The notes: a model not told the origin generated them from the sequence alone. A stretch of DNA of 63,582 nt, filler included, from Klebsormidium nitens (GCA_000708835.1; 4 parts of 4 records of this genome joined end to end with filler, not necessarily neighbours in it); one strand, 5' to 3'. Shown: positions 1 through 23,885, numbered from the whole stretch's first letter. A program made the numbers and translations.

Positions 1-23
1 GCCGACCCATTTATACCGGGCTC

Positions 24-42
24 GTGTGTGTGTGTGTGTGTG
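24..42. repeat. (GT)n microsatellite
   Basis: Uninterrupted GT dinucleotide run visible in the sequence. Confidence 0.9.
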
Positions 43-1361
43 AGCAGGGCCAATTTGCAGGGGTTAGTTGGGGCTTAGTACTTACTTGTTCATGTTTCGA
101 TATCGGTCAACGCGGTCAACCCGGTAAGGATTTCGGCCAATAGGAACATGTCATGTCAATAAGGGAGGCAATCACCTGACAATTGCTCGACTTTTTTATT
201 CCTTGAAAATAAAAATCTGCATAGAGGAATCTGTTCCGGTACATATTGACTCGATCTGGCCTTCTTTTGCCCTAGAAACGCCGCCCCCCAAAGCCCCCCT
301 GCTTTTTCCCTCTTTGGGTCTTTGTTTCATGCATTGCATGCCAGGGTGTGAGTGTGACTCGGAGGGATTGATACCTCGTGGTTCATGCAAGATTCAATTC
401 AGCTCAAGATGTAACCCAAAACCTAAATCTTAAACCCAAACCTCTCATTCTCCGACTCACCATCCCCCGAGCCCCCACCCATTCAGTCCCATACCCGGGC
501 AGTGCGCCGTGGTATAGGTAAAACTTATCTGACATGTAGGTATGTCTGGGGTACAAAGAATAATCGTAGTACTGTTGACGCTTCGATCGTACAGGTACTC
601 GCACGCATTCCGGCACGCATTGCGGCTTCTGTACTGGCTGAGTTAGGTACTCTTGCCAATGCGTTTTACCTCCAGAGCACACGCAGCAGCTAGTCTATCA
701 ATAAGTGACATAGAATTAAGCTCTGTAAGTTGTGGTAGCTTCTGAAGCTTCTTGTGTTGGCTTGAAGTTGAAGCGCTAAGATCGAAACGAGCACCGGCTT
801 CCAACCTGCAACCTCGAAGATTTTGGCATCTGGGACTTGCTGCCCCGGCTCAGTACTGCCCGCCCACTCAATAAGGACGAAGGACGGCGGAGTCATTCCA
901 GCTAAGTTGACTAGGTGAATGTATTTTGACTATTCTAGCCATCGTGAGCCTGCTTATCGTGGACTCTCGCGATCGTATTGCGAGGCCACTGGTGTCTGCT
1001 GCAGATGCTGGCGAAGGAGACCCTACAAACAAAATTGTTATCCAATATTGCTATTGGAGAGCTGATGCGCCACACCCATTGAAAACGCTTGAACTACCAA
1101 TCGTTGAGAGAGGAGCCCCTGGCTGCAATGTGCTTCGTTTTTGTAGTCTATATGCATACCAGGCTACTTGGCAAAAGTGGAAACGTAGACCGCCTGGGGC
1201 CACCTGCTGGGGGCCCGGGCTGTTTCAACCAATCCGTCTTGGTCCAATTCTCCACTCCTCATACTTCCTACGAAACAATAAGTTAATCACATGCCCGCAT
1301 TCAAGTCTTTGTGATAGTTTCAGCAACCTTAGTGTGCTAGGTCCAAGAACAAGTTGTAAAG

Positions 1362-4300
1362 ATGGCGACCAGTATGCGGAGAGTGTATTCGGGCTGGAGG
1401 TGGGGGTTTAGCGATGAGAATAAAGGTGCAGCTCCACCTAAGGGGAACAGATTGCAGAAGAGATACGGGATTCTGGTCCTGCGCCTCTTTATTGTGGTGA
1501 GCAGACCGGTGTTGAGACAAGCTGGCTTTCTGTACTTTATACTGGCTCACTAACATTTGCTGATAACAAAAGGTGCTCAGATTCAGCCTTCTGCGAGTTT
1601 TCAGACGTGAAGATTACAAGAGCTAAGTTGTATGCAAATGTGCACTTCCAGGGGCTCGATGGACTGTACAGTGCGAACAGACTTTCATTCATCCAGCTCA
1701 TCTAAGTTGTATTGCAACTTGCAAAGAACGTTCAACTGTGGCATGCACCACCTGGAGACGCTGAAAACATAATGCACAAACTAGGATCTAATATCTTTGG
1801 CTCAAGAGTACCATCAAGACCTTTCAAATGGACAGTTTTGAGTTGCTCAGGCTCAGTTCATGTGGATTGCTCACCAGCTCATGAGTTTCGAGCTCAAGGG
1901 ACATTTGGCAGTCAGGATGATGAAGTGCCAAACATGTAGCTGGCAATCCCCGCCTCTCATAAAGTCACAGTCAATGAGGCCAACATAGTGAAAATCGGAC
2001 TTTCCCTGTGGAAGACTTGCTTGCTTTGCTTGTGTGCAGGTCATTGTGCGACGTTGTTGTCAGGCACTGGAGCCCTCATCTATGTCATGACAACAAAGAC
2101 TGCCAAAGCATCCCTGGTCTCACTCACCCATGACTACCAACAAGAGCTTATGGATAGGGCCCTGGACAATGTTGCGGCCAATTTTTCCTCGTCGGCAGCG
2201 TGTCTCCAGTCCCTAGCGGCACATCTTGAGACGGTCGCGAGCCTTCCCAACATGACCCAAGAATATCGGGACGAATTGGTATGACTTGCATATTCCAGAT
2301 GTGCCTATCACTCTCCCTTATGCCTGTACCAAAGTCTGCATCGGATTCGACAATCCCGACAGTCGTTGGTGTGCTGACAGCGTCCCAAGCTTTGCAGTCT
2401 GCTTGCTGTGCGCCAACTGTGCCAGGGCTTGAAAGCAGTGCGCTGCAACAGGTTTTGACTCAAAGGAAGCATGCTTCAAGCTGCAACCGCCTCAATTGCA
2501 ACAATGAAGATTATGTGCTTTATATTCTACTGTCTGAGCAGTGCAATGGCAAGCAGGCCATAGAAGTATCGGAATCAGAAACAGCAATGTCAGCCATTTG
2601 CAGCAGGTTCAGCCCTAGAATCATCATTGGTGTATGGGGATTCATCAAGTCATTATCAAATGGAACAAACCCTGTGGAGCTCTGCTACAGGCATTCCAAG
2701 CCAGCCGATTCTCGTTCTTGAGCTGCAACTTCAATAAAGCGGGTGTGATATTGGAGAATGGAAAGTAAGTTCCACTGGAAAACATGCGAATCTGACCCTG
2801 CTCTGTATAGTGTTTTCTAGAGTACTTGGTTGTCCAATCTGGCCTTGAAATGGCTGTCGTAGATGTGTCTTGGATGACAGCCTGAACATCACCACTGTTC
2901 TGCGTTACAAGAGCAGTCATCACCATCTCAGCTTCGTAGGCGTGACGTCAGCTTCTGACATTGCGTGAGTGCTTTGCAGGTTCCTTTTTATGGAATTGAT
3001 TACTGATGCTACCAAGCCTCTGGTCGAGCCGACCCTTCAGCTTGACTATAACAGGAATACTTACCCGTTAGGCCAAAAGGTGCCTCAGTATCGAGCGGTA
3101 AGCTCAACAGACTCGTTAAGCTTCCCTCATTCATTCTTGCAGGCCTTGTCGTTTCAAGAGCCTTCGTCTGCTTTTGTGATCATCTGTTGAGCATTCTGGT
3201 ATGGATGCTCATTCCTCTGCTCAACTTGAGGTCGCTCAATCAGGCTAGGGTTCCATTCGGGACAGAGAAGGCCGTCAGATAGAGCTATGGTCCAATCCCC
3301 AATGAGTATGCCACTTGCGTCCAATTCCTCTAATACGCTCTTGGTCATTATTCTGAGCTCACTCCCCGCTTGCTTCGTCAGGTCCTCAACGCATCAAATG
3401 GATTGCCTATATCTGGATCAGTCGACTTGTTGCCCGATGACTACCGCACTCGCTCTTGGTATGAACAAGCTCTGACCTTCGGGACAGCTACCGAGATTCG
3501 TGTCAACGACGTCAGCGGGCAACCTGAGTTCCTAATGGCAAAAAGAGTACATTACCTTGATCCAAGCGAAGGCAGTGCGCAAGGTGTCGTCCGGGTCACG
3601 TTCCTCCTTGCGAACATGGACCAGTTGGTGGCTACTTTCGATCTGAAGGGTGGGACGATGTACTTCACCAATGGTTCTCACCTCATAGGCAGTAGCGTGA
3701 ATGGCTACACGAAAGGCGGGGGCAATCGTGAGCTTTTACGACCGAGCGATTCCAACAGCAGCCTTGTTCGACAAGCGAGCACGATAAAAGCTTCGAAAGG
3801 CACACCCGTCGAGGTTCGGATTGACGGCGTGAATTACTTCGTCGGAGAGACTGAAAAGGACATAGGAAACATTGTAATCCAAGAAACTTTCTTGCTTCCT
3901 AGCAAGTCAGTTCTGGGACACTTTGAAGCTCAGGCAATCCGCAGCAGGGACATCTCCATTGGCATTGCCTGCGGGATTGTCTTATTAGGTTGTCTGGTCG
4001 TCTTCACGATAACGGACCCAATCACGAAAGAGATGCGCCACAAAGCCGAGCTTCTTGAGAATCTTGAGGCGAAGCAGCGCGCTGAGACGCGAGATGTGTT
4101 CAAGACGAAATTCCTTGCGAGCATGAGGTGAGGTTGTACGCGCCATCCGAGTCGACAATGATGATCGGCAGCCAGAAGATTCCATAAGACCAGATTGAGT
4201 GGAGGAAGTTGCAATGCGAGCAGACTCTTGAAATTAGAAGATACTCTTGCGCATCTTAGTCCAATCAAACACTCTTATTATTTCACGCCCATAGCAGAAA

Positions 4301-7300
4301 ACGCATAGGAAGTCTTGGACCTTTTATGCTTTACTTTTGATGCTTGTTCGACCTGCTTGTTCCTAGTTCTTTGGCCCGCAACTCTGTCTCTGAGCATTTG
4401 TAATTGAGCTAGCACTTGAGTGCTAACCCCAACCTTCTTCAACTGGTCTCTTTGTTAGTCAGAAGTTTTGGATCTCCGTTTGGTCCCAACACTAACTCAC
4501 GTTATTGTGCAGTCATGACCTTCGCAACCCCTCCGCGGCAATGATCGGCCTCTTGGATGTGCTACTAGAGACACCACACACTGAGGAACAAGGGAGGCAC
4601 CTCAGCCAAGTCAAAGAGTGCGCTCAGCATCAGCTGAGCCTCCTGAACGAGGTGCTGGATGTCAGCAAGGTGAGATTGCAGATACTGTTGAGGTTCCTCC
4701 ACGTAACCCGGCCGACACCAGTTGCAATACTGTCCTTTCCTCACTCTAGCAGCGGCCGAACGGTGTCCGTGGTCCGAGATCATGCAGGAACACGACACAT
4801 GAGAATTATATTTACAGATGGAAACATGCCAGCATCAGGTTTATGTGGCCCATGCTTTGAGACAATTTGAGGCCGCTTGAAGTCTCCTTAAAACCACCGA
4901 AAACACTGCACGAGCTGCGTACTCATTGCTGTCTAGACCTCCTTGCTTGGATGATGAATCTGGTCTATGCTTGCAGATCGAGGCCGGGAAAATGCTGCTG
5001 GACAATGCTCCATTCGACCTGGTTCACTTATTGGAGTCCCTGATTGATGTCAACGGCGTCCAAGCTGCTAAGAAAGGACTCGAACTATGCCTAGACATCC
5101 GAGGTGGGTGTGTTGAGACCATATCTTCGGTCCTCGCAGTAATCTTCCATGCAACCACGAACATCTGTTGTAGAGGCCAGATTCCCCTCTTTCTATCCTC
5201 CAACACTTAGGAAAGTCTTTTCGACATGTTTCATGTCCCTCCTATCCAGCGTAGGCCGAGCTTCGAGATTAAGAGCTCACCTTCGACCCCTTTCTCTTGT
5301 CCGAGGACTCCCTCGTCTTTAGAATCCAGTCCTCTGTATCCTTGCGAGTTTCAAAACCCTTGCTTCCTTGTACAGGTGGGATCCCTCAGAAGCTCTTAGG
5401 AGACGCTACCCGAAGCAGGCAGATCTTTGCGAACCTGCTCAGTAACAGCATGAAGTTCACAAAGGTAAGGAAGGCTTCTGCAACTGTTTTGCTAAAAAAC
5501 TTGATACAACACGGTACTATTTTGGCAATGGCGACCTTCGTGGGTTATGTTTAACCGAGCGCTTTGTTGAAGCATAAACCTCAGCCTCGACCCAGGGAAC
5601 GATGTTCTGTTGGACCACGCAACCACGGGATCTATCTGACTCGGCACATGTCGCTCAGCACGCCGAAAACAACAGCGTAAGCTTAAGTGTAATCACAAGC
5701 TGAAATTTTGCTTATCCAATACCTGCAGGCGGGTTACATCGCCGTCCGGTGCTCTCCCGCAAATGCTGACGTCAGTCAAGTAGAGCCGGGCAAGATCAGG
5801 CTAGCTTTCGAGGTTGAGGATACCGGGTGCGGCATTCCGCCGGAGAAGCGGACCCTCGTTTTCGCGGACTACTCCCAAGCGGACGGCGCCGCGACGGCGC
5901 AAAGCTACGGCGGCACGGGGCTAGGCCTGGGTATCGTCAAGAAGCTGGTGCAACTGATGGGGGGGGAGGTGTCCATACTGGACAAGGACACCCCCGGTTG
6001 CATCTTCGGTTTCGACCTCGTTTTCCAGACGGTCGAAGGGGCCGGAATGTCGCGCCCCGGCCGGCGCGGAACCGCCAGCGGCGGAGTGCCGGAATCGTCG
6101 TTCCAGGGCAGCGCAAAGAGCTCTGGGGATCCCTCACGGCTGCCGCTTGCCGGGTTCAATCTCGTCTTTGGGCACGCCAACTTCCTCGCGCGGTCCATCA
6201 CCGCGGGCGCGCTGCGCGAGGGGGGCGCGACGGTCGTCGAAGCGGTCAGCTGGGACGAGGCGTTGCTGGCGCTTACCGTCTCGACCGGCTTGAACAGCCG
6301 CAGGAGCACGCGCCCGAGCCAGGCCCCGCTGCCGCGAGTTTCGAGCCCGGAGGAGTATCTCGACCCGTCGAACGCTCAGTCAGAGATCAGCGCTTGGACC
6401 AGAATCGACGAAGAAGCGGACGAGATTGCTGAGGCGACCGGAGGAAACGTCAGGCGTTCCAGCTCTCTCCGGTCGCGGGCGCCATCTAGAAGACCTTCAA
6501 GCGCGCGCACGGAGAGTAACGCGAGCGCGCGCGCGTCCGACGGCGGAGCGGACGCGTTTTTCATGGAGTGCGCCGTGCTTGACGTGGCCCTCCTGCCCGG
6601 GTTTCCGGATGTGTCTCGGTTGGAAGCAGAGCTACAGAAGCTGACAAAGGCCTTAGAAAAAGGTGAGGAAGGGCGCGACAGCCAATGACCAACCAAATGC
6701 TACGCACAATAAATGATATTCTCTTCATGCGGCAGCACAGATGCACGGCCGTTCGGCATTGCTTTTGACCCGCTCTTGGCGCAACGTTCCGAAGATTTCC
6801 GCGGGTGCTTTTCAGACGTTTCGGATAAAAAGCCGTAAATATTACCCCCTGTCAAGAAGTTCCCTTTTTCTTTTCACTGCTCTTACAAGGTCGCCGAATT
6901 GCTCATTTAATCGCTTGCGCAGCGGAGACATTGACAAGCCGCTGAGATTCAGCGAAGAACCTTGTTGAACCCCACTAGACGTTTCGGAATTCAGACGACA
7001 TGCAAATCCGTCCCCCTGCTGGCTCATCGTCTCACCAGATTTTTTCCCCCTTGCATCTTTACTACGGTCTTCAGACCACCCGGACTTGACACCCTCGGAA
7101 ACGATCCACTTGCTTAAAGGCGTCTTTTTGCAGTACTTACGTGCAAGGCACCAAGCGCCACCGCCTTACCAACCCCCTGCTAGGTGCCGAGCCAAGAAAG
7201 CTGCCATCACCTCACTCGTCTCTTGACACCTGTCTCGTCTTCGCGACTGTAAAGTAGAATGGAGCTTGCGATTGGCGTTCAGAAACGATTCTTTTGCGGC

Positions 7301-8490
7301 GCTTTCTTGTTACAGGTCGGGAGGTGCGCCGGAGCGGTGTGGTCGTCGTGTGGATCGTCAGCGGCAGCACGCCGGCGGACGTCCGCAAAGCGCTGCGCCG
7401 ACACGGTTTCGGACACGAGGTGTCCAAACCCCTGTACCCGTCAAAGATGGAGCACCTCCTGCTGTCGCTGGCCAAATCACCTAGGGCAAGCGGCGAGACG
7501 CCGGAGGACCCGCACGTGGTCCTTGAAGTGGACGGCTCCGATGCGTCCAGCTCGGACGTGGTCCCTGAAATCGACGGCTCCGATGCGTCCAGCTCGGACG
7601 TTTTGCTGCCGGGCAGCACGATGCCTCTCCCGGGACTCAGTAAAAGCGGTTCGGTGTCAGGTTCTCGGGGCCATTCCAAGAAAGCGGCCCCGGGGGGCGT
7701 TGCCCTCAAGCTTCCGCTGTCCGGCCTGTCGGTTCTGGTCGCGGAAGACAACCCGGTGCTGCGCCAGCTCGCGGTGCGCAGCCTCGAATCGCTCGGAGCT
7801 GACGTGGAGACGGCTTGCAACGGCCAAGAAGCGGTGGATGCCCTCCACGTGGCAGAGGCCAGCGCGAACCGGCCGTTCGATCTGGTGCTGATGGACTGCC
7901 AGGTGGGACATCGCCGTAGTGATCATGAAGCTTCATTGGCAGGCGTTTGGGCTCATGCTAAAAGCGCCAGATTCATAGCTGCGTTGTTCGCTTAACCAGA
8001 TAAGCACGGTCGGAACCTCGGGTCCGCACTGATCGAGTTGCTGATCATTTCCGATTACCACCCGGACTTCACAGATTGACAGGCCTACGAGAGGAATGGC
8101 TGGCTTCATGACGCAAAGGGTTCGAAATTGAGTCGGATCGGAAGTGAAGACAGACATGGAGACTGACATTACTTCTGAAGGGCCACTGTCCTGGACCGTT
8201 GCGGTCCAGTCAATCCTCACTTTCTTCCGACCGTCTTGCAGATGCCCGTCATGGACGGATACACCGCCAGCCGTCAGATCCGGAGCGAGGAACTAGAGTC
8301 GCCGCAGAAACGGCGCGTGGCCATCATTGCCCTGACAGCGGACGGGAGCAAAGATGCAGAGCGGCTCTGCCTCGACGCGGGCATGGACGGGGTTCTAACG
8401 AAGCCAGTGAAAGTAGACTCGCTAGCAGAACTGGTCAACAAATTGGTGGTGAAAGGAAATGGAGAAGTCGCAGCGGTGCAGCGAGTCTAG
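1362..8490 (+). CDS. Membrane-bound hybrid histidine kinase (extracellular sensor, HisKA, HATPase_c, receiver), AHK1/CKI1-like architecture; spliced
   Basis: Phase-consistent exons: ~2040-2278, 2691-2764, 2980-3097, 3382-4127, 4513-4669, 4977-5103, 5376-5464, 5729-6662, 7316-7902, 8236-8490. H-box KFLASM/SHDLRNP; N-box QIFANLLSNSMKFT; G boxes VEDTGCGI and YGGTGLGLGIV; receiver VLVAEDN...LVLMDCQ/MPVMDG...IIALTA...TKPV. Second TM segment IGIACGIVLLGCLVVFTI. The putative first exon 1362-1496 does not join ~2040 in phase, so the 5' end is uncertain. Confidence 0.88.
7516..7601 (+). repeat. 42-nt in-frame tandem duplication in the kinase linker exon
   Basis: gacggctccgatgcgtccagctcggacgt occurs at 7531 and 7573 (peptide VDGSDASSSDV / IDGSDASSSDV). 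Confidence 0.9.
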
Positions 8491-9683: not shown

Positions 9684-12600
9684 TCATTCAATGTGCGCGT
9701 GGACATAGTCTCTGAATATAAACTCCTGCTCAAGCTTGAAGTACACAAAAGCCGCCATACCCAGTGCCAATAGAGAGCCTGTCGTAAAAGCGAGACGAAG
9801 CGGGAGAGTGCCAGCCACAGAGCTTAAGAGGAGCGACAAAGCCGCGCTAGCCATCAGCCCGTAGCGCAACCGTTTCAGGCCGGTCAAGGCCCCACGACAT
9901 GAGGAGCAAACCTGAAAAAGGAGAAGTCGAGTTTATTGTTGATTCAAATTATGAACGAGGGAGGATGCGACCCGCTTTGTAGAAAGTGAAGCAGAACGCA
10001 AGACAAGGACAAAGAAGCACGGCTAAAACGAAAACAATGTCGCATCGTGCATCTGGTGGGAGTGGATCGCCGTTGCTGATCATCGAGCGCTAAGGTTACG
10101 GATCTGCTTAACTGGGTGCTCAAACTTATCCTGCCTGCTTGCCGACAAAACGCGACGGTCGGAAACAACACTGGTTCACTGAGCCCGCTACCCGAACCAC
10201 ACTCACAGTGTGACGTATTTGGAAGGCCAATTACGATTGTGAAATCTAAAGGATAGAACAACGACCGAGCGTTCTCCCAAAGCCTCCTCCGGGATCGTGC
10301 GGACCAATAAAATGACCAGAGGGCTGCCGACGTTCTCGTTTGCAAACGGCCCCCTAATAGAAGCTCGCCACATCCTCTCGAGAACCTCGAAAACGACCAA
10401 AAAAATGGAATCGATAATCGTGATCCACAACCCCAGCTCAGAACCATCGTTCCTGAGATGAACGTCCCAAAATTGCATGAGGCAGAAATGCGTACCTCCG
10501 TGTGCTGATGCAGCCGGTCGAGCATCTCTCGCCGGCTCCGCTCCACGTTCGGCTCCAGAGGGACCCCTTCCGGGAATTCCGGCCCGCCTCCGCCGTGCTT
10601 GTGCAGCCATTTCCGGAAAGCGAGGACGAGCCGGTCCGCTGACGTCGGCGTGTACGTCACCCGGCCGTAGTCCTTTGCCGAGATGCCACTCAAATACTTC
10701 TCCTGGCCTTGGAGGACCTAAAACGAGCGGATAGAAAGTAGTAATCAGACACGTGGCGCCTTTTGACTTGACATAAGGGATGCCGTTCCGTCACCATAAA
10801 CTCGAAGAAGCAGTGAGACAAGCAGGAAAATAGAAGCGACCAAAGCAGGACGCGTGGCGTGCTGTACGGGCGACAAGTAGGCTCGAGGTCCGGCTCGGTG
10901 GAGCAGGGCCAAGCAGAGACACGCGTCAGATGATCGAAACATAACGTGGACAGTAAGAACCTGGAAACGTCACTTTCTCGGAAAATTGGGGCAATCTTCG
11001 GCCCGTTTCGCTCCGGTTCCGACGCTTGCAACTTCGTGGGAAATTGTATCGTTCCGAAACCCCCTGCTTTCGGCCTTATAATCCGTGGGCAAGAATACCC
11101 GTAGTGTTACCGAAGATGGACAAACACTGCAGGTTTCAATTGGTGGTATCCAATCTGACTTGCCCTTATCGGGTAACAGCCAAAATGAAGCGCGACGTGC
11201 CAGATCGCAGTCGGCGAACGGCGTCTACGGGACAAGGCCCGCACGCAAGCGCAACCACCGGTTGCATCAGCGCCTTTTCGTCGTTCGACCCTCCTTTTCT
11301 TAGCACCGTCAAAACCCCCAAGTCTTTCAGCTCTCGTTCTTCATCCACGGGCGTTCGCGCCGCCACTTTGCGAACCAGATGGAGTATCAAGCGAGCGGTC
11401 CGCAGAGCGCCACGTGTTAGCACCTCACCAGCATGTCTCCATCGTACACCTTGTTGGACGTGATGTGCTCGTACCACCGGGGCACCGGTTGCCACCAATT
11501 TCCCCCCGGGGAGAGAAACTGGAAGAAGTTGCGCGCGCTTATGACGATCGAGCGGCTCTTGCCGGGCGCGGACGGGATGTTATAGGACGCGATGTAAATC
11601 TCCCAGACGTCGGGGCCGCCGATAACGGGGGGCTTGAAGGGCGCGGGGATCTCGATGCGGTTGACGAAGAGGCAGGGCGGGTGGAACTCGGAGAAGAAGC
11701 GGGGCTTTCCGGGGGGGTCGTTCTGGGTGCCGCCCCTGGGGAGGTGAGAGAATGAAATTGGGTCAGGAGCAGTCTGTTGGGCAAACTCGTTGGTCTCACG
11801 CAAAGCTCACTCGTAGTCCGATATATCAGGATCTGACTTCCCTGGTACCGTGAGGATGAGGATGAGGGTTACTCCAATAACTCTCGTGTGACCTAAGAGC
11901 CATGTGAACTGGAATAGGCACCCGGGGGACGGGTGGGGTTGGTATGGTGGTTAGGGTGGGTTGGGGTGCGGAGCGGGTGAATATTGGGGTTAGGGTTTTA
12001 GCTTGAAGTGCCTGGGTAACTCGTATGTTCGGTCACATGCCCGTTAGGTCACACGAGAGTTACCGGTATGAGGATGTACTGTGCAATTGGTCTGAGCGAA
12101 AGGAACAAAGCGATACAAAAGCCCCAGTAGTCGAGCCAACAGCATAGATCTCAAGAGTCTGCCTCGGGTTCTTTGAAGTGAATCCCTTTGAAACATCGCC
12201 GACAAGTGAACAACAAGTCCGTCGAACTTACGTTTATTTTGAAGTGCCTGGGTAACTCGTATGTTTGGTCACACGCCCGTTAGGTCACACGAGAGTTACC
12301 GGTATGAGGATGTTCTGTGCAATTGGTCTGAGTGGAAGGAACAAAGCGATACAAAGGCCCCAGTAGCCAAACCAACAGCATAGATCTCAAGAGTCTGCCT
12401 GGGGTTCTTTGAAGTGAATCCCTTTGAAAGATCGCCGACAAGTGAACAAGAAGTCCGCCGAACTTACTTGAACCCATTCATGCTCGCCTCCTCGACCCGC
12501 AGATTGAGCGGCCGCGCCCGGTCGCGTCTCCCGGTCACTTTATGGTGAGCGAAGTCAATGTGGCTCGGGTCCGCAACGTTCTCCGTCAGCGTGTCGTAAG

Positions 12601-15600
12601 CGTACGGCAGATCTCGCTGGATGCCCACGGTTGCATATGCGGGGTCGCTGAACGCGGGCGGCAGGCTTGCGGGCTCCTTGAAAAACGAGGCTTCCGGGTT
12701 TGCCGTGTCGGGCCAGACCCAGAGGAGGCCCTGTAAGCGGAAGAGTCGACGCGAGAGTCAGGATTGATTGGAAAACGGAGAGTATACTCAGTATTTTTCG
12801 AGGCTCGATTTGAACGGGTTGGGATACGCCGAGTTGGAGCTCTTCTCCAAGGAAGCGCAAACCGTCACCTTCGGAAGCCTTTAATCAAGCTACTTTGGCG
12901 TAGGAACCGAGTGTGACTCTGCGAATGCTTCACCTCGGACTAGAGTTAGGAACTGAATTCTTACTGTCATAAGAGTTACTAAGAAGTTGGCTGGACGATT
13001 TTGGCAAGAGGGAAGGTGGTAAACAAACCTCTTCTGACAAGGCCTCGAATCGCCCCTGTTGCAAGCATCCTGAGCAGGCCTTGTTTAAAGTGGAGCGTCA
13101 ATCAAGCTCTATACCTAGATGAAGCTGACCAATCTTGGCGCGAGACTAGATTCTCTCGGCTTTCGAGCTACAGGAGTTGGTGGAGGTAAAAAATGCAACC
13201 CTGGAGTTGCGGATCACAAGCTATGCTTCGCTTCACAGGCGAAGCAGTTCGCAGTGTGCTCGAAGAAAACCAAAGCTGATTGCATTCCCGCGTGTTCTAA
13301 ACGACGACAAGGACTATGAATGTGAGCTGCGGCTGACCAATACTCCCGTTCCCAAATTTGTTTCGTTCCTAAGAACCTGTCGTTGCTGGGGCTCCTCTCC
13401 AACGAGGTATAACGGCCGCACCTCGAAAGGAACCCGATGGGACAGTCAACGAGAGTGCCTTCACAACGGCAGGGTAAAAGAGCCCCTGTCAGCTCGAGCG
13501 ATCGAACTAGGAGTGACGGTCTCGCTTCCAAAGGCCCTCGAAACGGAACCTCAAAAGCTGCTGGAACCCCACTCTCCTCTAGAACGACAAGAGTCCTCCA
13601 GTTTCTCCTTCCTGCCCTTTGCATACTACATACTTCTCCTCTTGCCAATGTAGGTCGCTAGAGTAGATAATACGCTCCTTTAACGACTTGAGCGCGCTGC
13701 AGCAAAGGCTTCGCATGAACTCTAACCTGAAATTCTCTGGTGGGAAGAGCCACCGCGCACGCTCTCGAGTTCCTGTTAGCAGCCGCCTCAGGCCCACTGG
13801 ACGCCGCCTGGGGAATGACCGCGCACTTGCCGTCGCCGTCAAACGACCACCCATGGTACGAGCATTGCAGAAAGCCGGACTCGTCAATCCGTCCCTGCAG
13901 AAAGATGTAGGAGCAGGAGCGAGGTGGATAACTAGTGGCCATCCTGTGCGTACGCCAGGTTTCCAGCTGGTGCACATCTATTGATGGAGTTTATTAGGAA
14001 ACCATGAATTTTATTAATAACAAGGATCTTAAGGTACAGAAAGTACTGGATTCTCGCTTTAACCAACACTAAAACGCTAAGGACAAGATGACTTGCTCCG
14101 CACCCAAACCCACCCTAACCACCAAACTAACCCCACCTGTACCCCTTTACCTTAAGTTCCTTATTACAATTAAAGTTTATCCCTGTCTTATTAGGTGTAC
14201 TGGATGAAAGACAGAGAGTCAGCGGGTATTACACAACATTCATCCTCCACCTGTTTACAGTGACTACTGCAGAGATCTACAAGAGAACCAATTTTGCGCC
14301 AGGCTCCCCTTAAGCAGAACGACGTCAACTAACAGCGAACAGCCTCACCGACTTCCAACGTCAAATCAACAATAGGCAGACCGGGTGTCGCAATCGCCAA
14401 CCTTCAAAATTTTCAGAAGTTCTCGGAAAAGCAGCATAAGAACATCTGGAAAATAAGAAGGCCAACCAAGACTAAGAAAAGGACGTACCTCCGACAATGG
14501 AGCCAATCGGTGCGGACACTTGTCCTCCAAACAGATCCATTTTCCTTTGCTGTCCTTCCAGAGAACTAGAGGCCGGCCTAAAAGTTGGATTGGCGTTGGT
14601 GCTGAGGGGTCGAGATCCTCAAGAAGGGACACTGGATACCATTGCTGCTTCCAGTTGAACAGCTCGTTGTGCTCTTGCCTGCACAAAGCATGAAAATGAA
14701 GCTCAGAAAAGGGCAGACTGCCAGAAGCAGGCAATGCTTATAAAGTAAACAAGCAAGGCCTTCTCAGGCGTCCTTCAACGACAAGCACAAAAGAATTGTA
14801 CATGTGCTGAAGGTGTTGGTAAACTTGTCCGGAAAAGGTGACATTGTTTTGCAGGTGTACCAATCTAGGCCCTCTACTTGGCTGGAACAGCCAAAATCAT
14901 ACACGGAGGTGCACAGATCTAGGCCAAAAACTTGCATTGGGACAGACAAAGTTCTATCGCGCCATTGCTATGTACACAACTACTGAAACCTCCATATCAG
15001 CAACTTGGAAAACAACCTTGTTCTTTCAAGGATCCCAGACAGATTAACCAGGATCACATCACCAAAGGATGAGAACTGCAAAGAAAAAGTCTGATCTTGT
15101 GATTCATGTGATTTACAGGATCAACGTGATTCAAAGTTCAGCACATTTGACTTGAATGGCTCCGCTTCCTACATAATCAGCTTCTAATTCTCGGTGTCAA
15201 TTATAGCATTGAAGATATACACATGTTCGCTCACTGTTCAACCAGCTTAGACCAGCTTTGCTGCAACAAAGAAGCATTTGTCTCGCCAGCTAGAGCAGCC
15301 TCGAAAATTTGAGCCTAGCATGAACCTTGGTGAGAAACCACCACCACAACATCACAGTTCAGCGGCCATCCACTAAAAACCCCAATTGAGTACTCGCAGT
15401 TACAGCATGATTAGAAAAGATCCTTTCCTAGGTGCTACGACTTTGTACCATCATCATTCCATACGATGCATAAACCCTGTTTCATGACCTTGGTTCAATC
15501 AAAACAACATTGATTCAACAAACCATTTTGAAACCAGGGCCGCAGGGGCACCTGAAGTCGATGCTGCTTGGTGTGCATAATCCTTCAATCAAGGAAGCGA

Positions 15601-16298
15601 TCACATGATCCTCTTTCAGAAGACACGGGGATGATCTTTCCATCTCAAAAAGACATGTCTGCACCATCAGACAAGCTGACCCCTTTCTATGACCATATTA
15701 GAATCAACTGGTTTGAAACCAGAACCGCAGAGCCAACTCAGACCACTGCCACAGATGTGCATACTACTTCAACAGGAAGGAATTATATAATTCATTTTCA
15801 GACTTCCAAGACAAACAGGTGGTTGTTCCAATTTCAAAGCTGCGTGTTCATTACTCAAGTCCGCATGCTGCAGCCCTCTGACCATGTAATCCTTGCAACT
15901 GAAGGTGGTACATCACTCTGTGCCTGCAAACCTCACCGGTCTTCATCTGAAGCAATTCTTGGACTCTCAAGGGTCGCAGCAGCGTGACAAATCCCCGCTG
16001 AACCCTTACGCTCCTCCCTTCTTCGCCGTAGACTGCATGAGGTACCACTAGCTGTCGCTTTCTCTGATGAAGCTACAAACACAGATGCTGGCGCTGCGTT
16101 CAACGACGCAGGGAACGCCGACGAGAGATCAGCAAAAATAGTCCTTGCAAGAAGAGGTGCTCTTTGAAGTTTTTGAGTTCCCACAGCTGACCCGCTCTTC
16201 AGTAAGTCTATTTGGGTGCCCTCTGCAGAAGCTGACAGATGCCTTGCAGTATGGGAAACAACCGACGCGCCCTGAAAGGCAGCGCTGCACGCCTGCAT
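9684..16298 (-). CDS. Chloroplast Rieske non-heme iron oxygenase, PAO/PTC52/TIC55 family; 7 exons
   Basis: Exons 16298-15937, 14678-14489, 13894-13727, 12730-12468, 11735-11429, 10717-10496, 9911-9684, all GT-AG and phase-consistent. Rieske motif [26 protein letters not shown]; mononuclear Fe motif [14 protein letters not shown]; [15 protein letters not shown]; C-terminal HTE/VCSSC CxxC followed by a hydrophobic tail. Ser/Ala-rich N-terminus resembles a transit peptide. Confidence 0.92.
11878..12062. mobile_element. MITE-like intronic element with perfect 19-bp inverted repeats and G-rich core
   Basis: taactctcgtgtgacctaa (11878-11896) is the exact reverse complement of 12044-12062; GGG-tract core at 11925-11978. 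Confidence 0.55.
12003..12467. repeat. ~236-bp imperfect tandem duplication in an intron of the Rieske gene
   Basis: ttgaagtgcctgggtaactcgtatg...gaacttac is present at ~12003-12231 and ~12239-12467. Confidence 0.9.
14018..14166. mobile_element. Second MITE-like intronic element sharing the G-rich core (opposite orientation)
   Basis: 14091-14145 is a close reverse-complement match to 11925-11978; imperfect 19-bp inverted repeats at 14018-14036 and 14148-14166 (17/19 match). Confidence 0.5.
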
Positions 16299-19114
16299 CT
16301 TTCCACAGCGCTGCGCTCCAAAGCTCCGCAACCTGCGTCAGCACTTGATGCCCCTTTCAACAGAGATCTCGAGCTGCCAAAAACCCCTTTCCCTCCAATG
16401 GCAGAAGCCTGAAAGTAAGAGTACAGGGCACGTACCTCCGTCTGATTGACACACAGGTAGCTGACGTACCGGTAAGTACCTATTCTCCCATGCAGCCAAT
16501 TTCACCCGATCACACTCAAAAACTCTGCCACGTGGCTAGCCATACTTGTCCCCCCTCATTCATCTGCCGTTCAAAGGAAAAGTGTTTGTTATCCAACGTC
16601 GTACATCCTGACACGTCAAGGACCGCTCATTAGTTTGAGGCCAGCTGGCCCGGGTGGTGCACAGGTGGCGGTCTGTGTGGGCCCATGGTTTCCAATGATG
16701 GCATAATGGTAGCAGATTCGAGGGAGTGCTTTGCACTCATCAATGATTCCGGTTCTGCCATTCGTAGTCCGGTCATGCTCGACTGCAGTAGGTACCCACT
16801 ATGTTTGCAGGAGCGACCGTTTGTGTACCCGTTCTGTCGATACGTATGAGATGTGGAAGGCGGCAGCCCTGGTGAGGCCTCTGATTTATAGTGCACATTT
16901 GAAACTTCAAAATACCGGTAGCAAGCTCACATCATTGTAATCCTCCACCTATTTAGGATCAGAGAACAGATAGTGATGACACCACACACATTCATGTTAT
17001 GTCATCGCCATGAGAAGCCTATGGCCTGCAGGCAGCTACGGCCGGCGTGTAAAAGAGAACGTCAGGCCCATTGATTGTGCAGCACTGGTACAGCAAGTGA
17101 TCGTCCGCATAGGTGTGGCAATAAACTCTTGAAGTTGCCCACTGTCCAAACCTATTTGGCTATAGTAATCGTTGTGCGACTCGAGCTGCAATCAGAAGAA
17201 ATGAACACCCGCAATGCACACTTACCGATAAGATGCGCACGTCCTATGACTATATACTGTACCATTCAATTGTAGGAGCTTGTTCCATGCAAGAGCTAGG
17301 GCCTTGCATGGCGCCTCCTCGCGAGCTCTACTTATATATATGCCTAGCCTAAAGCATATTGCAAACCCGAAGCCAAGCTACTAGCTACTTACTATAATCG
17401 AGTGCAATCATGGTGGATCGACGCATGTGCGTCTCATTCATTCATGCAACCGGGAATTAGAAACGGTACGCTAGTGCAAGAATAGTCACAACTTGTCATG
17501 AAAAAGTTGGGCGGAATAAACCTTAGGAAAGCCTGCCCAAAATGCGCTGGCGCGCGCCCCAGAAAGTCAGCAAGGACCAGTCCTGATGCAGGCTGCTATC
17601 AACGACAAAAGGAGAGGCAAAATCCGGCGCAAGCGGCACCAAAACAGTCTCCAAGGACAGCTGAAAGTGTGCCTGACTGCCAATCAGCCCTAGGGCCCCA
17701 AAAACCCTCTGAAAATGTCAGGGAAGCCAATCTCAGAATGCCAAAATCAGCGGCACACAGCAGCCCTAGGCAGCCCTGATACTGCCTACAACGCAGCCAA
17801 ACCCTGCCGCCTCTTGCGGCGCTCTCACGCTCTGCTGAAAATAGCCAAAGATCTGATCACTGAGGCGCCAAAACTTGCGCTCCACAGCGCCACGCTGCGC
17901 TTGTGTAGGCCGAAAATCAGCCTATTACCAGATGCGTCGAGAAGCGGTGGTGCTTCCCTCAAACCCCACGAGTGCCTTCTCCATGTGAGAAGGTCTTCAT
18001 GCACGCGCCGTACCTTCTGAAGATGCGGTGGCTTCCTCCACAAGACCCGTGCCTCAACCGGATCTTTTGTAAGTCTACACAAGCCGGGAAATGACGATTA
18101 ANNNNNNNNNNNNNNNNNNNNNNNNNNNNNNNNNNNNNNNNNNNNNNNNNNNNNNNNNNNNNNNNNNNNNNNNNNNNNNNNNNNNNNNNNNNNNNNNNNN
18201 NNNNNNNNNNNNNNNNNNNNNNNNNNNNNNNNNNNNNNNNNNNNNNNNNNNNNNNNNNNNNNNNNNNNNNNNNNNNNNNNNNNNNNNNNNNNNNNNNNNN
18301 NNNNNNNNNNNNNNNNNNNNNNNNNNNNNNNNNNNNNNNNNNNNNNNNNNNNNNNNNNNNNNNNNNNNNNNNNNNNNNNNNNNNNNNNNNNNNNNNNNNN
18401 NNNNNNNNNNNNNNNNNNNNNNNNNNNNNNNNNNNNNNNNNNNNNNNNNNNNNNNNNNNNTTACACGTAGCTTATTGCATAGGCATCATGCTTTTTCGCT
18501 TCGACTGCATTTGTTGAGCGCACTCGACACGGTCCAGCCTCGACTCATTACGGCACGACAGCTGTCAGGCAACCGATTGTCGGTGCTGCATAGCCTCGAG
18601 CATACGTGAGCGCCACGTCAGCTTTGTGCATATGAGGCATGAGCGCCTTGTTAGCGCTCTGCATGTTGAGCATGTTTGTCACCATACTAGTTGCTAGCAT
18701 CATAGGCCACTTGGGCCATCTTGCCAGGCATCATAGGCATCAGCAGTGATAATAGACTCAGTAGATTCGTCCATCCTTCTAGATCGTGATTACGATACAT
18801 TAGAGTTAGCGTCACGGGCCATCATCGGACGGCCCAAGTTTCATGTCAGCGTAGATATTTAGCGTTTGCCTTAGATATGACATTTAGAGCGCCTATTCAC
18901 ACTAGTAGACTTGACTCAGAGACTGCAGGTAGACATCCTCTTGCTTGAGCATACCTAGACACTTTTTGTGAGTAGCTATTTGGAGAGAGCATTGTGGCGC
19001 TAGCACAATGTGGCACTAGTGTGCCAGTGGCACTAGTGTGCCAGTTCAGGCTGACGTCATTTTGGGGACTCTAGTTCTGCGGCGGACTCTTTAGGCCACC
19101 AGACACTAGGACAT

Positions 19115-20728
19115 TTGGATACTCGGACTGCGGACGGCGGTGTGACCAGTCAGCCCTTAGTTATACCAGGGTTCTCCGTGTTTGCACTTGACAGCATGGA
19201 ATCGTCACTCGCGTCCCAGGCTGGCCTGTTCACCGGCGAGCCCGGCGGGCCCAGCCTCATGCACTTGCGCCAGAATTATCAGGCGCTGATGACGGAAGTG
19301 AAGCTTAAGCCCAATTCGGACCGCCTGACACAGAATGATTACTTCCACCTGCTCGTAAAGATGACGGCAGGCGGTGCCCGTGATCAGGCAGGCGCCCTAG
19401 AGCGCCGCCTTATAACCGACCTAGAAGAGCGCAACGCTGCAGCGCTCCGCAACTACGAGCGTGACCTAGCCGACTATGAGCGGCAGAAAGTTGTATGGGA
19501 TGCTACGCCGGCAGCTTCGCGCCAGGCAAATAATGAACCTAAGCGGCCAGATAGGCCTGCAGCGCTCACCGAATATACCGACCCGGTGAATGCGTTCTCG
19601 AAGCACATGGAGGAGCTGTACCCTGAGCGGTCAAGCTCTCGTCTCGATGAGTTCACTCACTTCGCGGCCAAGCCCGGCGAGACGGTCGCGAGCCTCTCGC
19701 AGCGCATGCAGACCCTCAAGGGCCTGCTAAACCAGCCCGAGCACATGGCTGTGTTCCGGCTGCTCGGCGCATATCCGCGCAACCTGCAAAGCAAAGTCAA
19801 GCGCCAGCTTATAGCCTCTGGCCTCGACGTTGATAAGTGGACCGTACAGAAGGTCAGCGAGCTAGCTGTGCGCATCGATCGCACATATACCGAGGAGAAG
19901 CTGTGGACTGCGGCCACTAAGACAGAGGCCAGTACGAGTCGCAGTGCGCCAGCCGCCGCACAGCGGACCGATCCGCGCACATGCCATATATGCGGCAAGA
20001 CCGGCCATATTGCCCGCAACTGTCTGGCTCGGCCAAAGGCAGCTCATGCAGCACAGCACGCGCCAGTCGCGAACGGCCAACCTTTAAGCCCAAGCCAAAC
20101 AGGCAGCATAAACAAGAGCGGACCATGCTACAGGTGCGGCGAGATGGGCCACCTGGCAAACGTCTGCCCCACCCTGCGCCAACCCGGCGGCGCTGCGCAG
20201 CAGTCCGCCCGGGCGCCCGTTCAGCAGTGGTGTGACCATCATAAGGTCAATACACATAGCACGGCCGAGTGCCGCGCACTTAGCCAGAGTAAGCCGCGAG
20301 GCGCCAACCAGGCTTCGCAGGCGGCCAATCAGGCCACTCATCCTATGGACGCGACTCCGATGCCTACCCGGGAATCGCTCACCGATCCACCCTCATATGA
20401 GGAGTTGCTGGATTTATGGCAGCGCACCATGGCCGACAAGGGTCACGGTTATTTGGGCACCGTCATGGACCGATCACCCAGTCGCGTTCCGACCTGCACG
20501 GCCGCCTGTGCAGGCCACCGTGTCTCTTCGACTTTACCGGCCAGCCTGACGCGGCGTGGTCCGGAGGCGCAGCGACTTCAGGGTCGGCGTCAAATTGACA
20601 TGCCCCTAGGGTTTTATCCCCGCGACGTTATCGGGGCCCAGGTCTGCCAGTGCCCGATCCTGAGCCGACACATGCACCTGAGGTTCCAACTCCCGAGGTC
20701 GCACATGCTTCCGCGAGGATCCCCCTAG
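19115..20728 (+). CDS. Retrotransposon Gag-like protein
   Basis: CCHC knuckles CHICGKTGHIARNC (19982-20023) and CYRCGEMGHLANVC (20126-20167); CHHC finger WCDHHKVNTHSTAEC (20231-20272); capsid-like DEFTHFAAKPGETVASL. First ATG at 19196. Frameshifts near 20640 and 20920 look like decay. Confidence 0.85.
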   Translation: MDTRTADGGVTSQPLVIPGFSVFALDSMESSLASQAGLFTGEPGGPSLMHLRQNYQALMTEVKLKPNSDRLTQNDYFHLLVKMTAGGARDQAGALERRLITDLEERNAAALRNYERDLADYERQKVVWDATPAASRQANNEPKRPDRPAALTEYTDPVNAFSKHMEELYPERSSSRLDEFTHFAAKPGETVASLSQRMQTLKGLLNQPEHMAVFRLLGAYPRNLQSKVKRQLIASGLDVDKWTVQKVSELAVRIDRTYTEEKLWTAATKTEASTSRSAPAAAQRTDPRTCHICGKTGHIARNCLARPKAAHAAQHAPVANGQPLSPSQTGSINKSGPCYRCGEMGHLANVCPTLRQPGGAAQQSARAPVQQWCDHHKVNTHSTAECRALSQSKPRGANQASQAANQATHPMDATPMPTRESLTDPPSYEELLDLWQRTMADKGHGYLGTVMDRSPSRVPTCTAACAGHRVSSTLPASLTRRGPEAQRLQGRRQIDMPLGFYPRDVIGAQVCQCPILSRHMHLRFQLPRSHMLPRGSP

Positions 20729-20902
20729 AGACTTTCGACCCGCCGGCCGCCAGCGCTCGGCCCCGGCGCGCTCAGCCGACTTCGTCCCGTTCCCCTGAGC
20801 CAGATTTGCTTAAGGGGTTCGAGGAGCTGCCCCCAAGCGACGAAAAGTATCAGGGGCACATCATCCAGCCGAGCGCGCCTAGCCCGGCCCCAGCTCTGCC
20901 TT

Positions 20903-21591
20903 TTGAGGCGACTGCAGAAGATACTTGCCGACTCGACTGCGCCGAGCGGTCCCCCGACTTCGGCTGGTGCCTTGACAGAGGCGCCGGCAGACAACGACAT
21001 TTATAATCCGGCTAACCCTAGACTCGCTGCTCTGCTCAGCAGCCTGCCGGGTTCATATTACAGCGATCGATCGCAGGGCACCTACCGGTTCCCGCGCATC
21101 GATAACACCGGCCCGCGCCCTGCGATGCTTATCAACGTGCAGGTTCTGCATAACCTGGTCCTTGACTGCGGCGCCGACGTCGTTTTGGTTGGCCCGCGCA
21201 CTGCGGCCAAACTGAAGCTGACCACGGACAAAGTCAGAAAGAACGCCATCGAGATACGCGTTGCCAGCGGTGAGACGGTTCATATGGACGAGACCATCAA
21301 GCCAGTGGACTTCGTCCTGAACCCCGGGACGCCCCACGAAACCACCATGTGGGCCAAGATCATCATTGTCCGTGGCGACTTGCCCGACACCCTGATCGGG
21401 ATGAGCGTCATGGGCCCTCCTGGCATTCGGCCTGACTACTACAAACATGTCGTGACGTACTATGTCAACTGGTGGGAGCCACATGCGCGCGAGGCGCGTC
21501 TCCCCTGCTTCCTGCCGGTCAATTACGATCGGCCCGGCGCATCTGGAGCTAGCTGTGCTTGGCACCCCTCTTGCCTACAGTGCCGCACTGG
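20903..21591 (+). CDS. Retroviral-type aspartic protease domain
   Basis: LVLDCGADVVLV (Asp at 21164-21166) and downstream DTLIGMSVM (ILG-like motif). Confidence 0.8.
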
Positions 21592-23529
21592 TGCCTACAG
21601 TGCCGCACTGGTGCTGGCAGTGCCAGCACCAGCACAGGCGCGGCCAGAACTCCTGGGCTTGCGCCTGGTGCTCCGATTTCGTACAACAAGCTGCTCCAGA
21701 TTCCGTCACCCAACTTGGAGAAGCCGTTCGAACTCGAGAACGCGCGCTTTCGGATGTGGCACTATGAGAAGCACCTGATGCCCGAGATGACGGATCTGTA
21801 CGAGCGCAGCAAGGAACGGCTGGCCGATCCGCCGCCGAACCAGCGGCCTGTCACAGTGGAGGCGTACCAGCATTTGCGCCCCCTGGACACGAGCATGCTG
21901 GACCTGCGTGGGCCCCTGGCCAAGAGTGACGGCCCGGGCCTAGTTGTTCTGGAGCTCTTCTCCGGTATCATGGCCGGCACAGAGGCACTTGTGCGCGACG
22001 GAATTAAGATCCAGCACGTCTATGCATGCGAGAACGAGGCCAAGACACGCGCAGTCGCAGAAGAGCGCTTGAAAGTGCTGTCTGCGATTCGGCCTGAGCA
22101 GCTGAGCGTTGAAGCGTTCGCCGATTGCCACGCCTTCCTGCCACAGGATGTTAGGAAGATTACGCGCCAGCACATTGAGGACATGAAAAAGCCGGACCTG
22201 GTGATTGTCGGCTTCCCCTGCCAGGGGTTTTCGCGCGCATCTGACGCGCCCAAGGGGCTCAGAGACCCCCGCACGCAGCTTTTCGAAGAGGCTCTGCGTG
22301 TGATCCACTTGATCTGGCGCATCCACGGCCCGTGTGGGTACCTTTTCAAAAACGTGGACGCAGCCGACCATCCCAACCGGGACGTTCGGCGCGAATACAC
22401 CGAGGTCGTTCAGGCCGTCCTCGGCAAGGGCTTCGTTTTTGACGCGGTCACCATGGGCTCCTACGCCCACCGTAACCGGCGCTGGTGGACCAACCTGGTT
22501 CCAGGACACCTGGTTGAGGAGATGGCCGACAAGAAGTTCAAGCGTCGGCCCCCAGGTCAGCGCGTGCAGGACATCCTCGAGCCTGGACACACCGCCAAAG
22601 TGGCTCGGCACGCGCAGGCTTCTGGCTCAGTGACGGTAAACGTCCCAGGGCAGACCATCAAGGCTTTTGCCACCTTCGTCTCCCTGGCCAACTCGCACGC
22701 CTATCGAGTGGGGCAGCAGAGCATGGTACTCGATTGGGCAAACCGCGAGCAGAAGCCGACCGCCCTAGAGCGCGAGCGCGCCATGGGTTTCATGGAGAAC
22801 ACAACGGCGGCGCCCACCGATCGGATCAAGGAAGCCGATCGTCGCCGCTTGCTGGGCAGCACCNNNNNNNNNNNNNNNNNNNNNNNNNNNNNNNNNNNNN
22901 NNNNNNNNNNNNNNNNNNNNNNNNNNNNNNNNNNNNNNNNNNNNNNNNNNNNNNNNNNNNNNNNNNNNNNNNNNNNNNNNNNNNNNNNNNNNNNNNNNNN
23001 NNNNNNNNNNNNNNNNNNNNNNNNNNNNNNNNNNNNNNNNNNNNNNNNNNNNNNNNNNNNNNNNNNNNNNNNNNNNNNNNNNNNNNNNNNNNNNNNNNNN
23101 NNNNNNNNNNNNNNNNNNNNNNNNNNNNNNNNNNNNNNNNNNNNNNNNNNNNNNNNNNNNNNNNNNNNNNNNNNNNNNNNNNNNNNNNNNNNNNNNNNNN
23201 NNNNNNNNNNNNNNNNNNNNNNNNNNNNNNNNNNNNNNNNNNNNNNNNNNNNNNNNNNNNNNNNNNNNNNNNNNNNNNNNNNNNNNNNNNNNNNNNNNNN
23301 NNNNNNNNNNNNNNNNNNNNNNNNNNNNNNNNNNNNNNNNNNNNNNNNNNNNNNNNNNNNNGAGCGCGAGCGCGCCATGGGTTTCATGGAGAACACAACG
23401 GCGGCGCCCACCGATCGGATCAAGGAAGCCGATCGTCGCCGCTTGCTGGGCAGCACCATGGACATGCACGCTCTGACCTTCCTGGTCGGCTGCATCTAGG
23501 TCTTCCAGCAGGCCTTCTTTGCCGATTGA
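21592..23529 (+). pseudogene. Retrotransposon-encoded DNMT3-like C5 cytosine methyltransferase (probably inactivated)
   Basis: Motif I LELFSGIMAG; ACE; QDV; motif IV VGFPCQG (22216-22224); motif VI degenerate LFKNV (22348); motif VIII HRNRRWWTN (22471); motif IX/X ERERAMGF...RRRLLGSTMD, comparable to DNMT3 ELERVFGF...RQRLLGRSW. TAG at 23497, with frame open to TGA at 23527. Spans an N gap with a 96-bp overlap. Confidence 0.9.
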
Positions 23530-23588
23530 CGGCGCGCACGGCCGACGATTAGCGAACCGCACGGCCGCCACTCGGCTGCATGCGTAGC

Positions 23589-23885
23589 TGTAACGATTAC
23601 GATTGGTTAAGCCTAACCTCGTTCTCGACAGGATTTTGTTGACTTGCGGGTTAGCGAAACGGCGGTGGTTACGTCTTAACGACGCACTGCGTGGCTGTCT
23701 GCAAGACGCCGTAATATCCCGGATGGATCGGCTTCTGTGAGCCGATGTCACCGTTCAGGATAAGTTGTGTTCGGCTTCGCCGTTCGATGCAGCCAAGCTT
23801 ATCTGTGTTCTGCACAGCTTGCGTGGCTGGTCTTGTCAAAGGTAGTGGACAAGAGAGAGCTATACGATTAGTCGCATAATCCACG
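23589..23885 (+). mobile_element. Possible start of a nested LTR (TGTAACG...) interrupting the DNMT element
   Basis: Begins TGTAAC, like the gypsy LTR terminus at 63499; coding character ends here; runs into a gap. Confidence 0.35.

Follow-up and report, generated by a model that had tools for sequence, protein, structure and literature searches.

Intronless Dnmt3-type DNA methyltransferases (DNMTs) residing in a Gypsy retrotransposon, KnitGypsy-Dnmt3, have been described from Klebsormidium nitens, where they evolve under purifying selection in an element with DIRS-like terminal repeats (de Mendoza et al. 2018, Nat Commun 9:1341; PMC5890265). The published tree groups the K. nitens retrotransposon DNMTs as a divergent clade with Dnmt3 (PMC5890265), and later literature, bioRxiv 10.64898/2026.05.21.726589 among them, cites the family as the streptophyte 'Gypsy-DNMT3'. 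Hosts restrain transposons chiefly by cytosine methylation, and an element that brings a de novo methyltransferase of its own strikingly inverts this arms race. Here we analyze a locus at positions 19115-23529 of a 63,582-nucleotide stretch of K. nitens DNA (GCA_000708835.1; four parts joined with filler; hereafter the window). The locus is very probably a decayed and interrupted copy of a Ty3/Gypsy-type 'Gypsy-DNMT3' (KnitGypsy-Dnmt3) element, whose intact relatives are organized as Gag-protease (PR)-DNMT-TGA-reverse transcriptase (RT)-RNase H-integrase (IN)-PHD. An earlier note on this DNA had stated that such capture was already reported in charophytes, and KnitGypsy-Dnmt3 bears this out (PMC5890265): the Gypsy-DNMT3 kind has been known since 2018, and the window adds one diverged, dead copy.

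The locus shares with KnitGypsy-Dnmt3 the domain order Gag-CCHC, protease, DNMT3-like domain and then RT-RNaseH-integrase, and in both the DNMT is intronless and multi-copy. However, the annotated K. nitens copy nearest to the window DNMT matches it at no more than 56% of amino acids (about 68% of nucleotides); the nearest relatives of the window DNMT (76%) are metagenome contigs, and neither RT nor IN is present in the window copy, which is broken. The published description also puts the DNMT 'in the Pol polyprotein', whereas here the DNMT comes before RT and is parted from it by a single in-frame TGA. On sequence comparison, we regard the window copy as a diverged member of the already described family.

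More distant systems show partial likeness. SymbioDIRS-Dnmt3 of Symbiodiniaceae also has a DNMT3-type methyltransferase captured in a retrotransposon polyprotein, with de novo CG methylation demonstrated in yeast (PMC5890265), but it is of the DIRS type with a tyrosine recombinase and represents an independent capture in another element class and host lineage. Animal DNMT3A, 3B and 3C are the best solved-structure matches and share the unpermuted order I-X, with motifs IX and X aligning; unlike them, the window enzyme lacks PWWP and ADD domains, is fused to Gag-PR and has Lys in place of the motif VI Glu. Plant DRM enzymes are, like the window DNMT, DNMT3-related C5 methyltransferases of streptophytes. 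DRM, however, is circularly permuted whereas the window order is I, IV, VI, VIII, IX, X, and DRM structures in PDB match much more weakly. Chromoviruses and the 'EpiLTR'/DAM-LTR elements (bioRxiv 10.64898/2026.05.21.726589) are also Ty3/Gypsy elements with chromatin modules, but the relatives of the window carry a PHD finger rather than a chromodomain and their methyltransferase is DNMT3-like, not DAM or DNMT4-like. The same preprint treats streptophyte Gypsy-DNMT3 as a separate, earlier case.

Gag, protease and methyltransferase domains of the window copy

The coding run on the + strand (19115-23529), defined by open reading frame (ORF) listing, three-frame translation and Pfam, contains Gag, a retropepsin-type protease and a C5-DNMT in order. 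The earlier note had read zinc-knuckle Gag, aspartic protease and DNMT in this succession, and its reading stands: PF00098 and PF00145 exceed their cut-offs, and the protease, a near-threshold match in the window, passes the cut-offs in intact relatives that have the same domain. The features below are aligned where indicated to relatives, among them P0164, an intact protein, and L006, the closest broken copy.

19115-20644, + strand: Gag, with CCHC zinc knuckles at 19982-20023 and 20126-20167 (PF00098)
20620-20901, + strand: Gag-PR linker, in a frame different from gag; tblastn of P0164 switches frame here
20975-21550, + strand: retropepsin-type aspartic protease, D-C-G-A at 21164-21175
21607-22863, + strand: DNMT3-like C5 cytosine methyltransferase (PF00145), motifs I-X unpermuted
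21952, + strand: DNMT motif I, ELFSG
22210 (22210-22233), + strand: DNMT motif IV, GFPCQGFS, with the PCQ Cys retained
22345, + strand: DNMT motif VI, FKNV, Lys codon AAA at 22348-22350
22468, + strand: DNMT motif VIII, HRNRRWW
22768, + strand: DNMT motif IX, ERERAMGF
22840, + strand: DNMT motif X, RRRLLGST
23458-23529, + strand: DNMT C-terminal tail, interrupted by a premature TAG (23497-23499) ahead of the family TGA (23527-23529) (aligned to P0164, P0001 and L006)

PF00098 in Gag scored 40.4 bits against a cut-off of 20.8 (Pfam), and Gag is 61% identical over 509 amino acids (aa) to residues 10-507 of P0164. A conserved stretch of the relatives (GFEELPP...) falls in the linker frame at 20620-20901. 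The window protease scored just below both relevant Pfam cut-offs (PF13975, 24.9 bits versus 28.2; PF13650, 23.5 versus 24.3), and homologous protease domains of relatives exceed the Pfam cut-offs (P0004, 35.2 bits; P0019, 34.0). It is 75-78% identical to P0164 and P0169. The active site reads D-C-G-A as opposed to the usual D-S/T-G-A, a form common to the intact proteins P0164, P0161, P0165 and P0241 and thus a lineage trait.

The methyltransferase domain directly follows the protease, and the profile check suggested by the earlier note gave 37.3 bits for PF00145 against a cut-off of 22 (Pfam). Motifs I, IV, VI, VIII, IX and X were all located in the order first noticed; the one departure is motif VI, noted then as 'xNV', which reads KNV in the window and ENV in relatives. 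As a single sequence against PDB, the domain found its best solved-structure matches in mammalian DNMT3C, 3A and 3B (E 1e-10 to 1e-8). A family profile ranked DNMT3A/3C/3B highest (58-61 bits, E ~1e-15), followed by tobacco and Arabidopsis DRM (37 and 26 bits), M.HhaI (34) and DNMT2 (18), with DNMT1 absent from its PDB matches up to E 0.01. This ranking, with DNMT3A/3C at 61 bits and DRM at 37, supports the previously noted resemblance to DNMT3 over DNMT1 or DRM, and the window methyltransferase is classed by its sequence as DNMT3-like. It is 76% identical to P0164 and 56% identical to K. nitens GAQ93235.1.

Intact relatives and the position of the methyltransferase

Exhaustive HMMER searching with the DNMT portion as query returned 1072 proteins, many of which are polyproteins of 1000-3400 aa. 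The best named match was K. nitens GAQ93235.1 (1160 aa, CCHC, protease and DNMT, 56% identity), and on its scaffold, DF238327.1 (L001), a gene for RT-RNaseH-integrase begins 40 nt past GAQ93235.1. The window is collinear with DF238327.1 from gag to 38 nt beyond the family TGA (tblastx and blastn) and is also collinear, from gag to the start of the RT-RNaseH-integrase ORF (ORF2), with the metagenomic elements L003 and L006. The close relatives of the window (64-93% identity) are all JGI/ENA metagenome proteins. P0164 is an intact Gag-PR-DNMT of 1273 aa that is 61%, 75% and 76% identical to the window gag, protease and DNMT, respectively, and on its contig, L003, an ORF of 1116 aa encoding RT-RNaseH-integrase-PHD comes next. 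L006 is a broken copy whose DNA is 79% identical to the window over 3.8 kb. Gag-PR-DNMT followed by RT was also found in L004, L005 and Closterium sp. NIES-68 (L002), and RT, RNase H and DDE integrase occur in that order in L001, L003, L005, L006 and L008.

One unbroken ORF (1109-1285 aa) encodes Gag-PR-DNMT in at least 8 independent contigs, including those of K. nitens and Closterium (fusion proteins P0001, P0160-P0164, P0166, P0168 and P0241). The earlier note had proposed searching the genome for intact copies with RT and IN; intact relatives carrying both were found in L001, L003, L004 and L005. In these four, exactly one TGA(C) interrupts a frame that otherwise runs without a stop from gag through ORF2; ORF1 ends in ...FF[A/S/T/L][D/N]-TGA-C, and the RT YxDD motif lies 311-360 codons past the TGA. 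The frame likewise continues past one TGA in the broken copies L006, L007 and L008 and in the Closterium element. The in-frame TGA is located as follows.

L001, 4894: in-frame TGA
L003, 5140: in-frame TGA
L004, 9730: in-frame TGA
L005, 13844: in-frame TGA
L006, 12051: in-frame TGA
Window, 23527-23529: in-frame TGA

In this layout the DNMT has been added after the protease and before RT, on Gag's side of the single stop, and does not substitute for RT. The idea that the DNMT sits in RT's place, put forward in the earlier note, had to be abandoned, as intact relatives have RT-RNaseH-integrase-PHD after the single TGA in the same frame. The single-UGA design appears conserved from Klebsormidium to Closterium.

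The relatives showed additional features. A PHD finger (PF00628) closes the integrase ORF in L003 (5182-8532), L005 (13889-17971), P0015, P0021, P0022, P0026 and P0031, where it occupies the place of the chromodomain in chromoviruses. A second architecture, RT-RNaseH-DNMT-IN-PHD, is seen in P0015, P0021 (Scenedesmus sp. PABB004 'pol', KAF8056149.1), P0041 and many environmental contigs; its DNMTs are 31-38% identical to the window DNMT, and the position of the module varies among green-algal Gypsy elements. Metagenome contig L004 closes on itself (1-55 equals 10999-11053, a 55-nt overlap), and L005 holds two elements in tandem (1-5371 against 15764-21328); such patterns would fit terminal repeats that have collapsed, or arrays in tandem. 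What possibly goes beyond the 2018 description comes entirely from the relatives, namely the single-UGA layout, the PHD finger, the presence in Closterium and the second architecture in Scenedesmus and environmental contigs.

Lesions, interruption and assembly of the window copy

Compared with intact P0164 by tblastn, the window does not read from gag to DNMT as a single open frame but contains three frame breaks: within 20620-20644, between 20901 and 20975, and between 21550 and 21607. Contigs from public runs of the same organism, assembled independently, allowed comparison with sister copies in the same genome. At the second break, sister copies are 1 nt different in length at 20925/20926. 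At the third they differ by 38 nt, and the window version is found only in a contig of depth 8 that has no differences from the window. These length differences therefore identify the second and third breaks as private to the window copy. The third break is associated with the following feature.

21559-21620, + strand: copy-specific 62-nt stretch at the PR-DNMT junction; high-depth family contigs have 24 other letters instead

Additional lesions affect the methyltransferase itself. The TAG at 23497-23499 lies ten codons ahead of the family TGA (23527-23529), at a position where P0164, P0001 and L006 have a sense codon. The KNV of motif VI, versus ENV in relatives, replaces the catalytic Glu with Lys. 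Among the fetched relatives scored at this position, 55 keep Glu, one carries Lys (P0169) and another 18 did not match the search pattern; where motif VI is visible in those 18, Glu is still present, with EN followed by L, T or H and not V. The AAA codon for Lys is common to the window and the broken metagenomic copy L006/P0169 (79% DNA identity), which may be coincidental or may stem from a common ancestor within a dead sublineage. The window copy is non-functional, and it therefore packages and methylates nothing in its present state.

Downstream of the family TGA, the copy is cut short by a repeat.

23530-23588, + strand: start of ORF2 (RT-RNaseH-integrase ORF), 59 nt (19 full codons and 2 nt) that continue the DNMT frame past the TGA
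23589-23885, no strand assigned: unrelated very-high-copy repeat that begins TG; the scaffold ends within it, 297 nt on

The ORF2 start is 91% identical to L006 and 83% identical to L003 up to exactly 23588, after which sister copies in the same genome go on, encoding the same ORF2 residues as L006. In other contigs, many different sequences stand upstream of 23589. Over 23589-23885 the summed contig depth is 2.5e5 to 6e5, more than thousand-fold above the element, with about 8 for single-copy sequence, and the repeat has no match in the relatives, including 44 kb of fetched K. nitens loci. No RT or integrase was found by tblastn anywhere in the window; both are missing here because the repeat cuts the copy at 23588, 59 nt past the TGA, and the scaffold stops at 23885. 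In the source genome the family is multi-copy, with contigs 5-8% different from the window at a depth of about 180-200 versus 8 for the copy-private contig. The family therefore has roughly twenty-fold more copies than the window version, although contig depth tracks copy number only approximately. One run, which shares its species label with the best holder of the element, consists of contigs of about 100 nt rich in C>T and G>A changes, the pattern expected of a bisulfite library and circumstantially in keeping with K. nitens.

A stretch of unresolved letters lies within the DNMT coding region.

22864-23457, no strand assigned: assembly artefact, 498 N (22864-23361) followed by a repeat of the 96 nt preceding the gap

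Positions 22768-22863 are exactly repeated at 23362-23457, so that a 96-nt duplicate flanks the N gap. Contigs of two independent runs (X1 and X3) skip the 594-nt period and join 22770 directly to 23365, and in a contig of a third run (X5) 22863 runs straight into the letters of 23458 onward. The N gap is two overlapping contig ends left unmerged by the scaffolder. The merged reading is in frame (...RRRLLGST|MDMHAL...) and the same in every relative. Given the overlapping duplicate and the bridging contigs, the DNMT is therefore complete and in frame across the gap. Nor was the gag-DNMT linkage created by the gap, which begins only after Gag, PR and every DNMT motif from I to X.

A terminal-repeat-like sequence precedes gag.

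18463-18919, + strand: leader, terminal-repeat-like, upstream of gag; resembles the direct repeats flanking the closest broken relative, L006

The leader matches L006 at 15468-15628, 5428-5755 and 15662-15865 (76% and 69%) and is also similar to 8698-8790 of L003, in the region after ORF2. Its 5' limit is masked by a second assembly gap at 18103-18460. Just before that gap, 110 nt on the - strand (17976-18084) show a reverse-orientation match of 73% to L006:6040-6148, a segment that in L006 separates the 5' repeat from gag. Neither Rfam nor tRNA scanning of the entire window returned a match, and no clue to a primer-binding tRNA emerged. CpG observed/expected across the element is about 1.0, and there is therefore no sign of methylation-driven CpG decay.

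Mechanism, alternative explanations and other features of the window

Stop-codon readthrough occurs in some retroviruses and plant viruses. In intact relatives of the window copy, a stop at the TGA would make Gag-PR-DNMT the main product, and occasional readthrough would yield the full polyprotein. The protease would then free the DNMT, which would be present in the particle at Gag-like amounts and could methylate newly made cDNA or a new insertion. Methylation of cDNA or of the element itself by its own DNMT is in our judgment rather unlikely; the idea agrees with a published hypothesis (PMC5890265). Slightly more credible, though still doubtful, is the possibility that a DNMT placed upstream of a leaky UGA, and so made within the capsid precursor at Gag-like dosage instead of the low levels usual for Pol, would serve as a chromatin writer, joined in the readthrough product by a PHD reader for targeting. 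The published wording, 'in the Pol polyprotein', leaves such a design unstated.

Several observations weigh against a decayed Gypsy-DNMT3 copy, or against the mechanism proposed for its intact relatives. The case for readthrough comes from the conserved frame and the TGA-C context, and a consensus fold of five relatives over the 120 nt past the TGA revealed no convincing conserved RNA structure (-2 kcal/mol). In the one published assay of an isolated KnitGypsy-Dnmt3 domain, expressed in yeast, no methylation was seen, a result its authors call inconclusive (PMC5890265). With respect to the element itself, no annotated K. nitens protein is nearer than 56% to the window DNMT, so that kinship indicates Klebsormidium or a close streptophyte alga, with either an unannotated, diverged subfamily or a related species as the bearer, and the window contains no long terminal direct repeat pair, only the 5' side being present. 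Moreover, K. nitens copies have split direct repeats after ORF2 and not plain long terminal repeats (also PMC5890265). Such split repeats occur in DIRS elements, which are known to have captured DNMT3, and could suggest that the locus belongs to a DIRS-like, tyrosine-recombinase element resembling dinoflagellate SymbioDIRS-Dnmt3 and not to Ty3/Gypsy. We consider this very unlikely, as all full relatives encode a DDE integrase (PF00665 + PF17921) and a Gypsy-type RT-RNaseH (PF17917, PF17919), and no tyrosine recombinase was found in them.

The frame breaks bear on three further explanations. Because frameshifting is frequent in retroelements, and because the copy is interrupted but not visibly deleted, so that its remainder may lie past the inserted repeat, the locus might be a functional element that uses programmed ribosomal frameshifts and has its RT and IN just beyond the scaffold end. 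Intact relatives, however, read gag through DNMT in one frame without a shift, and two of the three breaks are private, sister copies being 1 nt and 38 nt different in length. The premature TAG, the motif VI Glu to Lys change and an ORF2 cut after 59 nt also argue against function, as does the loss of the motif VI Glu, where readable in fetched relatives, in only one, itself a broken copy; the chance of a working element is accordingly very small. Retention of Gag-PR-DNMT by the host as a domesticated gene for its own methylation, without RT and IN, would fit the presence of only the gag-PR-DNMT part and the usefulness of DNMT3-type enzymes to hosts. The three frame breaks and the missing catalytic residue speak against it, the terminal-repeat-like leader is still upstream, and the family TGA and first ORF2 codons remain, showing that RT was cut off by insertion and not neatly lost. 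We give domestication next to no credence. An equally slight chance attaches to a host DNMT3 gene that merely lies beside a gag-protease fragment or was misassembled onto one, even though the region spans an assembly gap and is not a single open frame. Gag, PR and DNMT motifs I-X are upstream of that gap, which is an artefact bridged by independent contigs; at least 8 other contigs, drawn from several sources, have the same fusion as one ORF of 1109-1285 aa, the DNMT is intronless and the family is multi-copy. The gag-DNMT mis-join, which the earlier note had named as a threat to its own reading, is thus ruled out. A decayed and interrupted Gypsy-DNMT3 copy is the explanation we retain.

Elsewhere in the window, exon-like ORFs at 3370-7995 (+ strand) resemble a host hybrid histidine kinase: HATPase_c scores 60 bits and a response-regulator receiver 35 bits, and Cache is matched weakly. 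Positions 11997-12467 hold a tandem duplication of 235 nt (94% identical). Finally, a pair of 51-nt G-rich inverted repeats, at 11924-11974 and 14095-14145 and 2.1 kb apart, may bound another mobile element.

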